Sequence record: NC_005083.2
DNA length: 64,000 nt
Reading direction: 5' to 3' (one strand)
The position numbers and the translations under genes were made by a program. Below are positions 1-9,812 of this stretch, one piece after another. The notes beneath the pieces were generated by a model. That model was given only the letters and a program-made list of their open reading frames with translations. It was not told the DNA's origin and searched no databases. How positions within the stretch are numbered: position 1 is the stretch's first letter; every line of letters begins with the position of its first letter.

Positions 1-118
1 TAAGTCTGTACTGCATTTCAACAGCAAATGTACAATATTTTCGAAGATTGCGTTTTACAATCTCACAGCGATGCAAGATACAATCAAGTTCGTCATTTAT
101 GTCATCAAACTTATTCAT
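1..118 (-). CDS. Hypothetical protein inside the tRNA cluster, 5' part only (MNKFDDINDELDCILHRCEIVKRNLRKYCTFAVEMQYRL...), running off the window edge
   Basis: Manual translation: ATG at 118-116 preceded by GAGG, open to position 1. Not in the ORF track. Confidence 0.6.
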   Translation of the reverse strand, partial: MNKFDDINDELDCILHRCEIVKRNLRKYCTFAVEMQYRL

Positions 119-132
119 AAAACCTCGAAAAT

Positions 133-256
133 TGGTGGAGAGTGATGGATTTGAACCACCGACCAAAAGATTTACCTAGTTATTAAGGTTTGCAGCATGA
201 ATGCTTGTCAGTATTCTTTAACATTCTTTTGCTCTACCAGACTGAGCTAACTCTCC
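133..256 (-). ncRNA. tRNA-like RNA 1: intact acceptor, D and T arms and CCA end, with a 54-nt loop replacing the anticodon loop
   Basis: Minus strand: GGAGAGT-TA-GCTC AGTCTGGTA GAGC-A-AAAGA[54 nt]TCTTT-TGGTC-GGTGG TTCAAAT CCATC-ACTCTCC-A-CCA. Confidence 0.85.
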
Positions 257-262
257 ATAATT

Positions 263-380
263 TGAGGGTGAAGTACAGGACTCGAACCTGCGACCTCCGG
301 CGTGCATGTAAATGCAGAATGAAATCTTATCAGACTTCGTTTTTTGAGCCGGCATTCTAACCAACTGAACTAACTTCACC
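263..380 (-). ncRNA. tRNA-like RNA 2: 46-nt loop replacing the anticodon loop, G-1:C73-type acceptor, no encoded CCA
   Basis: Minus strand: G-GTGAAGT-TA-GTTC AGTTGGTTA GAAT-G-CCGGC[46 nt]GCCGG-AGGTC-GCAGG TTCGAGT CCTGT-ACTTCAC-C-CTCA. Confidence 0.85.
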
Positions 381-384
381 ATAG

Positions 385-478
385 TGATCAACAGCCCTCA
401 GAATACCCGCAGTCTACACCCTATAATAAGGGACTATACTGAGTCGTTTAATGAGTCGGATAACTCAACTGTTAATCA
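385..478 (-). ncRNA. Putative ~95-nt multibranch structured RNA between the tRNA-like units
   Basis: Closing stem TGATTAACAG/CTGTTGATCA; inner helices GAGT/ACTC, CTCAG/CTGAG, AGTC/GACT, CCCT/AGGG; no ORF. Confidence 0.5.
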
Positions 479-490
479 AATTGTTAAAAA

Positions 491-628
491 CATATAGTTG
501 CGGGTGCAGGATTCGAACCTACATCACGATCTTATGAATGATATGCGAAATTGATTGCCGTACAGATTCTTATCAGAATCAGTTTTGTGCTACGTGTGCT
601 ACCACTTACACCAACCCGCAACTATATG
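491..628 (-). ncRNA. tRNA-like RNA 3 with expanded anticodon region, enclosed by a 15-bp perfect terminal stem; no encoded CCA
   Basis: Inverted repeat CATATAGTTGCGGGT (491-505)/ACCCGCAACTATATG (614-628); D arm GTGT AAGTGGTA GCAC; T arm GTAGG TTCGAAT CCTGC; 4-nt variable loop TGAT. Confidence 0.8.
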
Positions 629-634
629 CTTTCG

Positions 635-674
635 GGATGCTTACGCAGGTTCTTCTCTACGTAAGCACAGATCC
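635..674. other. Bulged stem-loop
   Basis: GGAT-GCTTACG ... CGTAAGC-(ACAG bulge)-ATCC. Confidence 0.45.
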
Positions 675-694
675 TCAATGTATATTTTGCCTTA

Positions 695-783
695 GCTAAT
701 CACAACACAACCCAATATCGTGCGCTTTAATTACGGGATTGATGACCCGTTCGCATGTGATTAGCGTAAAAGTATGATTACGC
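695..783 (-). ncRNA. Putative structured RNA (nested hairpins)
   Basis: 10-bp perfect inverted repeat GCTAATCACA (695-704)/TGTGATTAGC (756-765) enclosing TGCG/CGCA and ACGGG/CCCGT; adjacent GCGTAA/TTACGC hairpin. Confidence 0.45.
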
Positions 784-874
784 ACCTTTTCTTCTTCAAT
801 GTCCAAGGCAAAGAGGACTATGAATACCAGTGCGAGAAGATATACAATCAAATTGCTCACCTCGCTTAATAAGT

Positions 875-1021
875 GAGAGTACATTGGTCGAGTGTAACGG
901 AATCGAACCGTTCCCACGATCTCCCTATGATATGCGTAAATTGGTTGCTGAATATAATCATGTCTGATTACAGTATGCTACGTGTGCTGCCACTACACCA
1001 ACACTCGACCAATATACTCTC
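875..1021 (-). ncRNA. tRNA-like RNA 4 (core 885-1007, ends A-CCA) with expanded anticodon region inside a 21-bp terminal stem; paralog of RNA 3
   Basis: CGAGTGT-TG-GTGT AGTGGCA GCAC...AACGG TTCGATT CCGTT-ACACTCG-A-CCA; inverted repeat 875-895/1001-1021 with one non-Watson-Crick position; insert clearly homologous to RNA 3. Confidence 0.82.
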
Positions 1022-1022
1022 G

Positions 1023-1174
1023 ATATTTTAAATGTGCGCTACTTGCACGCCGACTGAGCGAATTTTAACTCAGCTAGTTTTTGTTTGAGACATCGTCCGC
1101 TAAGACTATTCTCTGCATGCCAGAACTTATACTGGCTCTATGTATTCATTTCGGCTAACGCACATTTAAAATAT
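1023..1174 (-). ncRNA. Putative ~150-nt structured RNA with a 16-bp perfect terminal stem
   Basis: ATATTTTAAATGTGCG (1023-1038)/CGCACATTTAAAATAT (1159-1174); inner helices GCCGA/TCGGC, GCCAG/CTGGC, CTGAG/CTCAG. Confidence 0.6.
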
Positions 1175-1175
1175 T

Positions 1176-1280
1176 ACTCATCTTCAGAGAAGAGACAGAA
1201 ACGATGAGTCTAGTCTGTTTAATCAATGTTGTTCATCTTCAAGAAGAGGCGAGAACGATGAACTTAGCTCGCTTAATCAA
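1176..1280 (-). repeat. Two tandem ~55-nt repeats, each folding into an H-type pseudoknot
   Basis: Copies 1176-1226 and 1231-1280; stem 1 ACAGA/TCTGT vs GCGAG/CTCGC, stem 2 ACTCATC/GATGAGT vs GTTCATC/GATGAAC; all stem differences are compensatory. Confidence 0.8.
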
Positions 1281-1288
1281 CTGTGTTA

Positions 1289-1316
1289 ATCTTATCAGCT
1301 TCTCAGCGAAAGTCAA
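1289..1316 (-). promoter_or_regulatory. Sigma70-type promoter for the RNA array
   Basis: TTGACT-16 bp-TAAGAT with TG extension and an A-rich upstream element. Confidence 0.7.
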
Positions 1317-1380
1317 CATCTTTTTCAAATATTTCATCGAGTTGAAAGTTTGTTTTCTGTCTCTCGACTCGATGAAATAC

Positions 1381-1408
1381 ATTCTACATCCTTTTCAGAT
1401 GAAGTCAA
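1381..1408 (-). promoter_or_regulatory. Second tandem sigma70-type promoter for the RNA array
   Basis: TTGACT-16 bp-TAGAAT with an AT-rich upstream element. Confidence 0.7.
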
Positions 1409-1424
1409 CAACTATTTTAACTTT

Positions 1425-8672: not shown

Positions 8673-9812
8673 ATGGGATTTTTAAGTTACGTCGGTCTTA
8701 ACGGAAAACAAAGTGATACTCTTGATCGTGTACTGTCTTTTGATGGGGGCGTTGAAAGTAGCACAACTGAGATTACCCAAGACACAGATCAGGGCAGAGT
8801 TAGCACGTCTAATATAGTTGCACTGACATATCCGCCCAATCTTGGCGCGAGATCTGGACACTCGAACTTTTTTATTTTTCGAGCGTATGACTTGGCTAGC
8901 ACAACAAAGCAACATTACACTGACATGCGGCAGTCATTCACAGCATCATCGAAAGAATCTAAGCAGGCGTCTGAAATTCCTAGTGAGTTGATGGCAACTA
9001 TGGCTCTTTACGCGCCAAACTTAGTTGAAGAAGTTTCGCATGAATATGACAAAACACCGACTTCAGTTTTAAATGACTTCTTAGCCGCAGCCGCTACAGC
9101 AGCCGGTGCAGATACTGTTTCTCAGGGTGTAGAAGCGGGTAAGAAAGCCGTAGCAACCGCAGCCGGTGCTACGTTAGCACAGATCAAGCGTTCATTCATT
9201 CAATCAAATGCTGCCGGTCAGCTTGAGAAGAACAGCAGCGTAGTTACGGATAACGTTACTGTAACTGCATACAAAGGGACCGCTCAACGTCAGCAAACAT
9301 TGATGTATCAATTTCACCCGAAATCACTAGATGAACTGAAGATCGTCGGTGAGGTCATTAAAACATTCTATCGACTTTCTCTACCAGTGAAAGGTCAGAT
9401 TAGTTCTGATTTGCTAGATACTGGTAATGCTGCATTAGGTTCAGGGTTTTCAAATGGCTTTGCGAAGTATGCAACGCTATTGAAAACGCCGCCAGTGTGG
9501 ATGATTGAAGAAGTTTCAGATGTTGACGCGACACGATACACCCCGCGATTCGTTTTCGGACCTGCGGGTATCACGTCAGTGAAATTAAACAGAACACCAG
9601 ATCAGTATTGGCGCACATTTCGCGGTACAGCAGGCGACCCAGCAGGTATTGAACTTGAAGTAACGTTCACTGAGCTTATCCCTATGGATCGTGCAATGTA
9701 CGAGCGAGATCAAGCAAGTAGCATTCGTGGTTACGACAATGGTACCACTACTGCAAGTGGTAACCGTAATGATTCTGGTTCATTCTTTGGTGATATTGGG
9801 AGTTTATTCTAA
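8673..9812 (+). CDS. 48: gp48 baseplate tail tube cap
   Basis: Tube-like fold (ITSVKLNRTPD, IELEVTFTEL); first gene of the 48-53-27-5 block; CTAAATA late-type promoter upstream. Confidence 0.75.
   Translation: MGFLSYVGLNGKQSDTLDRVLSFDGGVESSTTEITQDTDQGRVSTSNIVALTYPPNLGARSGHSNFFIFRAYDLASTTKQHYTDMRQSFTASSKESKQASEIPSELMATMALYAPNLVEEVSHEYDKTPTSVLNDFLAAAATAAGADTVSQGVEAGKKAVATAAGATLAQIKRSFIQSNAAGQLEKNSSVVTDNVTVTAYKGTAQRQQTLMYQFHPKSLDELKIVGEVIKTFYRLSLPVKGQISSDLLDTGNAALGSGFSNGFAKYATLLKTPPVWMIEEVSDVDATRYTPRFVFGPAGITSVKLNRTPDQYWRTFRGTAGDPAGIELEVTFTELIPMDRAMYERDQASSIRGYDNGTTTASGNRNDSGSFFGDIGSLF

Follow-up and report, generated by a model that had tools for sequence, protein, structure and literature searches.

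The final 64 kb of the Vibrio phage KVP40 record (NC_005083.2; 64,000 nucleotides, 100 % identity, hereafter the window) begins with four tRNA-like genes, RNA1 to RNA4, located on the minus strand between positions 133 and 1007, and each of them carries the same hairpin module inserted in its anticodon arm. On balance, the module is probably the binding element of a phage Ro60-like protein, in which case RNA1 to RNA4 and the nearby tRNA-Pseudo-3 of KVP40 would be analogues of Y RNAs built in tRNA topology. The motif shows strong covariation, is spread among viruses in two connectivities and is linked to a gene of the DUF2828/DUF7788 family, whose product is predicted to adopt a Ro60-like fold. 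Physical binding and the function downstream of it are proposed here by analogy with Ro60 and its RNAs.

Four tRNA-like genes with an inserted module

The region is common to about 50 related Schizotequatrovirus vibriophages. Two of the four genes were annotated in KVP40, as tRNA-Pseudo-4 and tRNA-Pseudo-5; elsewhere members of the set are called tRNA-Asn, tRNA-Phe, tRNA-Cys or 'OTHER'. The Rfam tRNA model (RF00005, cut-off 29) matched RNA1 at 55.5 bits and RNA2 at 51.9 bits, skipping inserts of 49 and 45 nt, respectively, in the anticodon loop. The acceptor, D and T arms of RNA3 and RNA4 are readable, and neither gene was reported by this model in the window scan; ARAGORN found zero tRNAs in the window. 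The genes and their module copies, with covariance-model scores, are as follows (window coordinates).

133..256, minus: RNA1, tRNA-like with encoded CCA, 'tRNA-Pseudo-4' of KVP40; in the parse the insert follows the Asn-like loop AUGUUAA within the 5-bp anticodon stem AAAGA/UCUUU
191..216, minus: module copy 1 (RNA1), GAATACT-GACA-AGCATTC-ATG-CTGCA, 34.1 bits
267..379, minus: RNA2, tRNA-like, 'tRNA-Pseudo-5' of KVP40; in the parse the anticodon stem CCGGC/GCCGG surrounds the insert, with a U33-containing loop on neither side
313..338, minus: module copy 2 (RNA2), GAAGTCT-GATA-AGATTTC-ATT-CTGCA, 39.0 bits
498..620, minus: RNA3, tRNA-like, unannotated in KVP40, no CCA; the insert interrupts the 5' strand of the anticodon stem (CG before it, AUC after it) and the loop downstream is of 8 nt, AUUCAUAA
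556..581, minus: module copy 3 (RNA3), TGATTCT-GATA-AGAATCT-GTA-CGGCA, 40.3 bits
885..1007, minus: RNA4, tRNA-like with encoded CCA; the insert interrupts the 5' strand of the anticodon stem (CG before it, AUC after it) and the loop downstream is AUAGGGA
946..971, minus: module copy 4 (RNA4), GTAATCA-GACA-TGATTAT-ATT-CAGCA, 38.2 bits; its closing pair is A-U where the other copies have U-A

The descriptor N7-GAYA-N7'-N3-CNGCA found exactly 4 matches on both strands of the 64 kb, compared with a mean of 0.09 and a maximum of 2 in first-order Markov simulations; the hairpin part alone would be expected by chance about 15 times in the window. The covariance model of the module gave 34–40 bits for these copies and 15 bits for the next best match in the window. 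A fifth copy fitting the same descriptor is present in KVP40 tRNA-Pseudo-3, just outside the window. In all these tRNA-like genes the module forms part of an insert of 41–55 nt in the anticodon arm.

Conservation and covariation of the module

Covariation was assessed on 84 covariance-model matches comprising 62 distinct sequences. Stem cells of the alignment were paired in 92.9 % of cases, versus 37–50 % when the partners were slid, and double changes were seen in 121 cells versus 37 in shuffles. Across the set, hardly any variation is seen in the inner C-G and U-A pairs, the 3-nt spacer or the nucleotides C-GCA. Pairing of the CNGCA, or a helix closing the two ends of the insert, was inconsistent among the members and gave no usable covariation.

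An earlier note on this DNA, made from the letters of the window, had described the module as the shared payload of the four RNAs and postulated selection on RNA structure together with fixed nucleotides. The four strings quoted in it are all present on the minus strand with 0–1 stem mismatches, and both claims are supported: in the wider alignment that the note had asked for, the spacing and the closing pairs stay constant and the covariation is strong. Two details had to be relaxed. The loop, given as GAYA, keeps its G and A ends, but its interior is looser (G-N-N-A, with GUCA, GUUA, GAAA and GAUUA variants), and the 7-bp pairing, kept in the window copies with at most one mismatch, often lacks the outermost pair in the wider family.

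No Rfam family was found for the module, either at the gathering score in the whole window or at E<=10 in window positions 100–1100, and no earlier description of it was found in the searchable literature. RNAs of this kind are missed or mislabelled by current tRNA finders and Rfam.

Distribution of the hairpin form

IMG/VR was searched with the pattern CTGAYAAG-N8-CNGCA and a downstream T-loop as the only requirements. Among the 119 matches obtained, the five additional stem positions were all paired in 44 and four of the five in 22, where about one match with such pairing would be expected by chance, and the stem sequences differed widely. The same pattern applied to 185,579 bacterial and archaeal genomes gave 7 matches, all of them unpaired and due to chance. 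In an independent scan, over-long tRNA-like genes were collected by the acceptor, D-arm and T-arm alone; the strict module was present in 27 of the 41 genes found and close variants of it in about 9. The module thus defined occurs in many unrelated phage contigs.

One 120-kb viral contig (locus L074, IMGVR_UViG_3300033696_000004, positions 269-900, plus strand) carries at least 5 consecutive interrupted tRNA-like genes resembling diverged KVP40 RNA1, RNA2 and Pseudo-3. Their module loops are GUCA, GUUA and GAAA, and their anticodon loops are more canonical than those of the KVP40 copies, e.g. CUUAUAA.

Linkage to a gene for a Ro60-like protein

Open reading frames (ORFs) from 61 module-bearing loci were clustered. 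A protein of 460–560 aa with Pfam DUF7788 and DUF2828 domains is encoded in 24 of the 61 loci on the same strand as the module and is often adjacent to it. The KVP40 member, KVP40.0300 (DUF2828 + DUF7788), matches the hidden Markov model of the cluster at 1.7e-159; its gene is located outside the window, on the strand of the tRNA cluster and downstream of it, 9.6–11.2 kb from the module RNAs. The MIDAS motif D-x-S-G-S-M of the vWA domain is invariant in the family.

Comparison of the protein profile with PDB sequences gave marginal matches only, confined to the vWA region (E 0.02 for solved TROVE proteins), and because the sequence barely reveals a likeness to Ro60, a comparison of folds was needed. 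The AF2 model made of a KVP40.0300 homologue (pLDDT 87, pTM 0.87) had Ro60/TROVE proteins as its top 7 PDB matches, aligned over the full length with E values of 1.5e-9 to 1e-6 and TM scores of 0.54–0.64; later matches were partial and mostly confined to the vWA domain. As modelled, the family has the defining Ro60/TROVE architecture, a HEAT-repeat ring followed by a C-terminal vWA domain with MIDAS.

The gene was found in 23 of 60 hairpin-module loci (551 kb) in comparison to 1 of 119 random phage tRNA loci (995 kb), which corresponds to an odds ratio of 73 with p=7.5e-12 in a Fisher test inflated by related contigs. The neighbouring PF04308 RNase H-like gene (KVP40.0299) was considered as an obligate nuclease partner and rejected, being present in only 6 of 80 loci selected by the DUF2828 protein.

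Two further observations concern the surroundings of the gene. In Listeria phage A511 a phosphohydrolase, an RtcB-type 'tRNA splicing ligase' and a second RNA ligase are encoded within 6 kb after the Ro60-like gene (locus L111, 14842-18554), a gene set that fits an RNA-repair neighbourhood. In another phage contig encoding the Ro60-like protein, the tRNA cluster contains a full-length tmRNA (locus L125, 8605-9054, plus strand; Rfam 75.4 bits).

A permuted form of the element

The first pointer to a second form of the element came from the 80 loci chosen by the DUF2828 protein alone, in which weak covariance-model matches were all placed on the strand of the gene. They belong to permuted units, tandem stem-loops of the type [AG-N5]-N3-CAGCAA...payload...A-rich-[N5'-CU]-G, made of the same parts as the hairpin form: the A-rich run, the 7-bp helix ending in C-G/U-A, the 3 nt and CNGCA. 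In a dedicated scan 71 units were found on the strand of the DUF2828 gene versus 3 on the opposite strand (about 5 and 1.5 in shuffles). Units were present in 39 of the 80 loci, and 37 of the 71 were situated no further than 600 nt from the gene. Features that the scan did not impose agree with the hairpin form, namely the 3-nt spacer (63/66) and the G after CU (63/66). The hairpin loop is replaced in these units by linkers of 4–22 nt, and since it can be opened or exchanged for arbitrary linkers without loss of the motif, it is dispensable. Copies outside tRNA bodies and circularly permuted copies, which the earlier note had advised to look for, therefore both exist.

In A511 a promoter and three tandem units precede the DUF2828 gene, the last unit ending 34 nt before the start codon. 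Three permuted units are present in Bacillus phage MrDarsey, a false negative of the strict scan with a helix of 6 bp, and several are located just downstream of the DUF2828 gene in Leptolyngbya phage Lbo-JY46. KVP40 itself has two permuted units inside its tRNA cluster. In addition, the leader of KVP40.0300 contains a motif-like and operator-like unit, GACAU-UUUA-CAGCAA-...GAGGAA...-AUGUC, which encloses the Shine-Dalgarno sequence and the start codon. Elsewhere in the window the permuted pattern gave background-type matches in coding regions only. Two of these KVP40 sites have the following positions.

Locus L115 ~9712-9760, minus (KVP40 record ~169.7 kb, outside the window): unit in the KVP40.0300 leader
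Locus L004 6346-6520, minus (KVP40 record ~177.3-177.5 kb): tRNA-Pseudo-2 and permuted unit

It was also noted that tRNA-Pseudo-2, which resembles a tRNA for Tyr in having the loop CUGUAAA and a long variable arm, is directly followed by the permuted unit AG-CUUGC-AUA-CUGCAA...GCAAG-CU-G, and that the ORFs of KVP40.0300 and GAP32_176 both open with AUG-UCA-GCA, which itself contains CAGCA.

Long permuted units enclose a permuted tRNA-like domain composed of a T-arm, a closed acceptor and a D-arm. One of them is a weak full-length match to YrlA (locus L194, 784-887, 31.3 bits), and the order of its arms, read from CNGCA on, is that of the KVP40 RNAs. The KVP40 RNAs and the long permuted units are thus circular permutations of one design.

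The link to DUF2828 had at one stage been doubted, as the hairpin form was lacking in 77 of the 80 loci and in four cultured DUF2828 phages; the permuted form and the control loci overturned this doubt.

Position of the insert and decoding features

Altogether 43 distinct members were parsed against tRNA numbering. In most of them, what remains without the insert is an anticodon stem of 5 bp and a loop of 7 nt that contains U33 and R37. The insert usually divides this stem on its 5' strand, behind position 28, 29 or 30; it is sometimes found at 31/32, and in RNA1/RNA2-type genes it is placed 3' of the loop; overall, the site ranges from 27/28 to 31/32, or is 38/39. Some bodies match the revealed anticodon (a Glu-type D-arm with UUC; the Asp-type loop CUGUCAC), and it was this agreement, together with the restored anticodon arm, that suggested a small intron.

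Other features do not suit decoding. Ser anticodons are present on class-I bodies (variable loop of 4–5 nt, no long arm) in five lineages, and in the tRNA sets that are most complete, normal isoacceptors of the interrupted genes are present as well, which makes the latter redundant. The window copies lack the combination of a 7-nt loop, U33, R37 and matching identity elements: U33 is missing from RNA2, the loop of RNA3 is of 8 nt, the anticodon of RNA4 is AGG (A34) and RNA1 is ambiguous. A search for near-identical alleles lacking the insert found none; the best uninterrupted match was 81 % identical. Inspection revealed no bulge-helix-bulge at the insert junctions, where a continuous helix is broken on one strand by the insert. 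The tRNA shape is kept more faithfully than the decoding features, and the carriers have the look of tRNA mimics rather than decoders.

A perfect 5-bp anticodon stem with an 8-nt loop after removal of the insert was observed in several unrelated members (AUUCAUAA, AUGCAUAA, AUCGAAAA), i.e. RNA3 (window 531-538, minus strand) and loci L056, L094 and L021/L057/L078. Anticodon loops of 8 nt are otherwise familiar from frameshift-suppressor tRNAs. Loci L014/L043/L072 and L037/L099 have near-identical interrupted tRNA bodies in which the anticodon alone differs (UGU versus UGA), an apparent anticodon switch between close relatives.

Proposed mechanism and alternative explanations

The adjacency of the gene, the strand bias, the enrichment, the Ro60-like fold and the precedent of Y RNAs together point to the module as the site of the Ro60-like protein. 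In the proposed mechanism a TROVE + vWA protein of the DUF2828/DUF7788 family, KVP40.0300 in KVP40, would recognise a 7-bp helix with C-G and U-A as its last two pairs, an A-rich strand entering on the 5' side and N3-CNGCA(A) leaving on the 3' side. In KVP40 RNA1–RNA4 and tRNA-Pseudo-3 a GNNA loop caps this helix, which is inserted in the anticodon arm of a tRNA-shaped RNA; in the permuted units the loop end is open instead and the helix encloses a payload, in some cases a permuted tRNA-like domain. If Ro60 and its Y RNAs are taken as the model, both the helix and the single strands flanking it would be contacted by the protein. The tRNA body could serve as a second module that provides stability and processing by tRNA enzymes, and possibly tethers RNA-repair or tRNA enzymes.

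Several observations speak against this proposal. The canonical Ro60-contact motif of YrlA, GNCGAAN0-1G (PMC4201824), is not present in RNA1–RNA4, Pseudo-3 or the units of A511, MrDarsey, Lbo-JY46 and L194, so recognition would have to work differently. A canonical anticodon stem-loop is left in most members when the insert is removed, for which a pure scaffold would have no evident need. The contigs behind the Fisher test represent roughly 12 independent protein lineages, 37 of the 60 hairpin loci have no such gene within the fetched flanks (roughly 5–7 kb per side), and the hairpin-in-tRNA form is found in only 3 of the 80 protein-selected loci. The distance between the gene and the RNAs in KVP40 exceeds the 4 kb typical for YrlA, and GAP32 has a DUF2828 gene with no clear unit.

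As the main alternative, the insert could be a genuine small intron with the module as its splicing signal, cut out by an endonuclease of the phage or the host or through chemistry of its own, the halves being rejoined by phage RNA repair (Rnl/RtcB, kinase, phosphoesterase) into a functional tRNA. We consider this rather unlikely, although it could coexist with binding of the Ro60-like protein. The restored anticodon arm, the splitting of the 5' strand of its stem between the two flanks and the occasional agreement of body and anticodon are in its favour, as are a PNK-like kinase and a metallophosphoesterase among the neighbours, RNA ligases in related phages and the presence of other, unexplained tRNA introns in Lak megaphages (PMC6784885). 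However, the insertion point is variable, Rfam contains no ribozyme or intron family matching it, and neither a bulge-helix-bulge nor intron-less alleles were found. The Ser anticodons without a long variable arm, the 8-nt loops, A34, the missing U33 and the redundancy of isoacceptors do not fit functional tRNAs, and tandem permuted units outside tRNAs cannot be introns. A combination of both ideas is judged unlikely; in it the Ro60-like ring would recognise the insert in the anticodon stem, which phage RNA-repair enzymes would then cut out before rejoining the tRNA.

That the module is the signal of some other factor (a boxB-like antitermination hairpin, an RNase site or a decoy for tRNA-modification enzymes), its link to the Ro60-like protein being indirect, appears quite improbable. 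Many module loci have no Ro60-like gene in the fetched flanks, and CUGACAAG, which resembles the P22 boxB loop region and G34-type anticodon loops, was counted for this explanation; against it, linkers replace the loop in the permuted units, units adjoin the Ro60-like gene in phages as unrelated as those of Listeria, Bacillus, a cyanobacterium and Vibrio, and the enrichment over control tRNA loci is 73-fold. It is very unlikely that the genes are decaying pseudo-tRNAs hit by a small selfish insertion (like a miniature inverted-repeat transposable element, or a homing relic) with no function at the RNA level. The pseudogene label given by the KVP40 annotators, the irregular anticodon loops of several KVP40 copies and homing-endonuclease-like ORFs in some tRNA clusters would suit such decay, which is contradicted by the compensatory stem changes across the 62 distinct sequences and by spacing and single-stranded nucleotides fixed across unrelated phages. 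Moreover, every copy runs in the sense direction of its tRNA, whose arms are intact, and no target-site duplications were seen by inspection.

The earlier note had left the choice between a protein-binding and a catalytic element. The former has gained a candidate partner through genomic linkage, while the latter found no support. About a dozen invariant nucleotides round a short helix are typical of small ribozymes, and the size of the insert (about 45 nt) is near that of pistol or twister; but neither group I introns nor small ribozymes gave a covariance-model match in window positions 100–1100 at E<=10 or in the whole window at the gathering score, the loop can be opened and exchanged for arbitrary linkers, and no conserved tertiary pairing was found outside the hairpin. 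A self-cleaving or otherwise catalytic module is hardly credible. We favour, with some reserve, recognition of the module by the Ro60-like protein.

Other features of the RNA4-RNA1 region

Two sequences upstream of the RNA4-RNA1 array match the sigma-70 consensus and are putative promoters on that match only.

1408-1381, minus: sigma-70-like promoter match TTGACT-16-TAGAAT
1316-1289, minus: sigma-70-like promoter match TTGACT-16-TAAGAT

Between these sites and RNA4, at window ~1180-1420 (minus strand), three hairpins are found, one of them CATCGAGT...ACTCGATG and the other two similar copies of (T)CATCGTT-CT-rich-GAAGATGA; this stretch could be another small RNA or a processing region. The terminal helix of RNA4 runs past the 7-bp acceptor into both flanks (875-1019, minus strand; about 20 bp, fold z-score -5.8), and that of RNA3 is likewise extended past the acceptor stem (491-625, minus strand). 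Unlike in ordinary pre-tRNAs, these extended helices may be processing or stabilising stems. The ORF KVP40.0319 (73 aa, GTG start, window 696-917, minus strand) overlaps the 3' part of RNA4 (885-917); unless the two features truly overlap, the ORF call is spurious.

Implications

If the module is indeed bound by the Ro60-like protein, the DUF2828/DUF7788 phage proteins would gain both an identity and a defined RNA ligand. The family is large and is present in phages used as models or in applications, such as KVP40, A511/P100 and phages of Bacillus and Enterococcus. The long-standing 'pseudo-tRNA' genes of KVP40-type vibriophages would be explained, and they would represent a new Y-RNA architecture, with the protein-binding helix inserted in a CCA-ended tRNA of normal topology. 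Y RNAs would also be tied directly to tRNA genes, through both circular permutations of one design, and the role of Ro60-type ribonucleoproteins in phage-host conflicts over tRNA would become testable in tractable phages. Should the insert be excised with the help of the protein, the interrupted genes would be conditionally activated tRNAs, for example spares upon attack by host anticodon nucleases; it would be the first case in phages of a tRNA splicing system other than group I and would give a Ro60-type protein a role in a catalytic pathway. The compact descriptor and the covariance model can be used to annotate these RNAs.

Comparison with known systems

In the boxB/N nut hairpins of lambdoid phages, of which P22 boxB contains CUGACAAAG, the boxB pentaloop is itself the recognised feature. 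The module is similar in being a short phage hairpin with a G...A-type loop and an A-rich run before it, but its loop is dispensable, and what stays constant in it are the closing pairs and the CNGCA on the 3' side. Engineered 'tRNA scaffold' RNAs, in which a foreign RNA replaces the anticodon arm for stable expression, likewise carry a functional element in the anticodon arm of a tRNA body that gives folding, processing and stability. In contrast to them, the phage module is natural and conserved, and the anticodon stem-loop is retained beside the insert.

As in tRNA introns of archaea, eukaryotes and Lak megaphages, a short insert is present in the anticodon arm, and its removal restores the arm in most members. 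The archaeal and eukaryal introns have a bulge-helix-bulge (3-4-3) and are usually placed at 37/38, whereas here this structure is missing, the position is variable and mostly in the 5' strand of the stem, and the same motif exists outside tRNAs as well. The 'enigmatic' tRNA introns of Lak phages were considered as prior art and dismissed, being longer (e.g. 93 nt at 37/38) and without the module.

Another close parallel is that with the Y RNAs, to which Ro60 proteins bind. In bacteria the genes of these RNAs adjoin the Ro60 gene and share its strand, and the RNAs resemble tRNA and are known in more than one permutation (PMC4201824). TROVE proteins are encoded by some jumbo phages (PMC7824862). 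Like YrlA (Rfam RF02553) and Yrn1 of D. radiodurans with Ro60/Rsr, the phage RNAs combine a tRNA-like domain with a helix for a protein, the binding being presumed here by analogy. They are also similar in their position near a same-strand TROVE+vWA gene, in being often multicopy and in often lying near RNA-repair genes (PMC4201824, PMC7824862). In the broad sense a Y RNA is the RNA partner of a Ro60-type protein, encoded close to the gene of the protein and on its strand; in location the phage elements fit this definition (71:3 by strand, 37/71 within 600 nt, 23/60 versus 1/119 loci), those of KVP40 by strand but at 9.6–11.2 kb.

There are also differences. The phage protein belongs to DUF2828/DUF7788 rather than to an annotated TROVE family, and the conserved phage element is a helix with N3-CNGCA and an A-run instead of the GNCGAAN0-1G of YrlA. 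The YrlA model (cut-off 69 bits) had a sole window match of 29.8 bits, composed of the T-arm of RNA2 and the D-arm of RNA1. YrlA is permuted with a closed acceptor, whereas in the KVP40 RNAs the arms follow one another as in a normal tRNA, the acceptor end is open and CCA is encoded (RNA1, RNA4); the permuted order was not found in the window RNAs, only in related units beside the protein gene. In KVP40 the helix is an insert of the anticodon arm, whereas in YrlA the 5' and 3' ends form the Ro60-binding stem. The phage RNAs are not YrlA but a parallel system.

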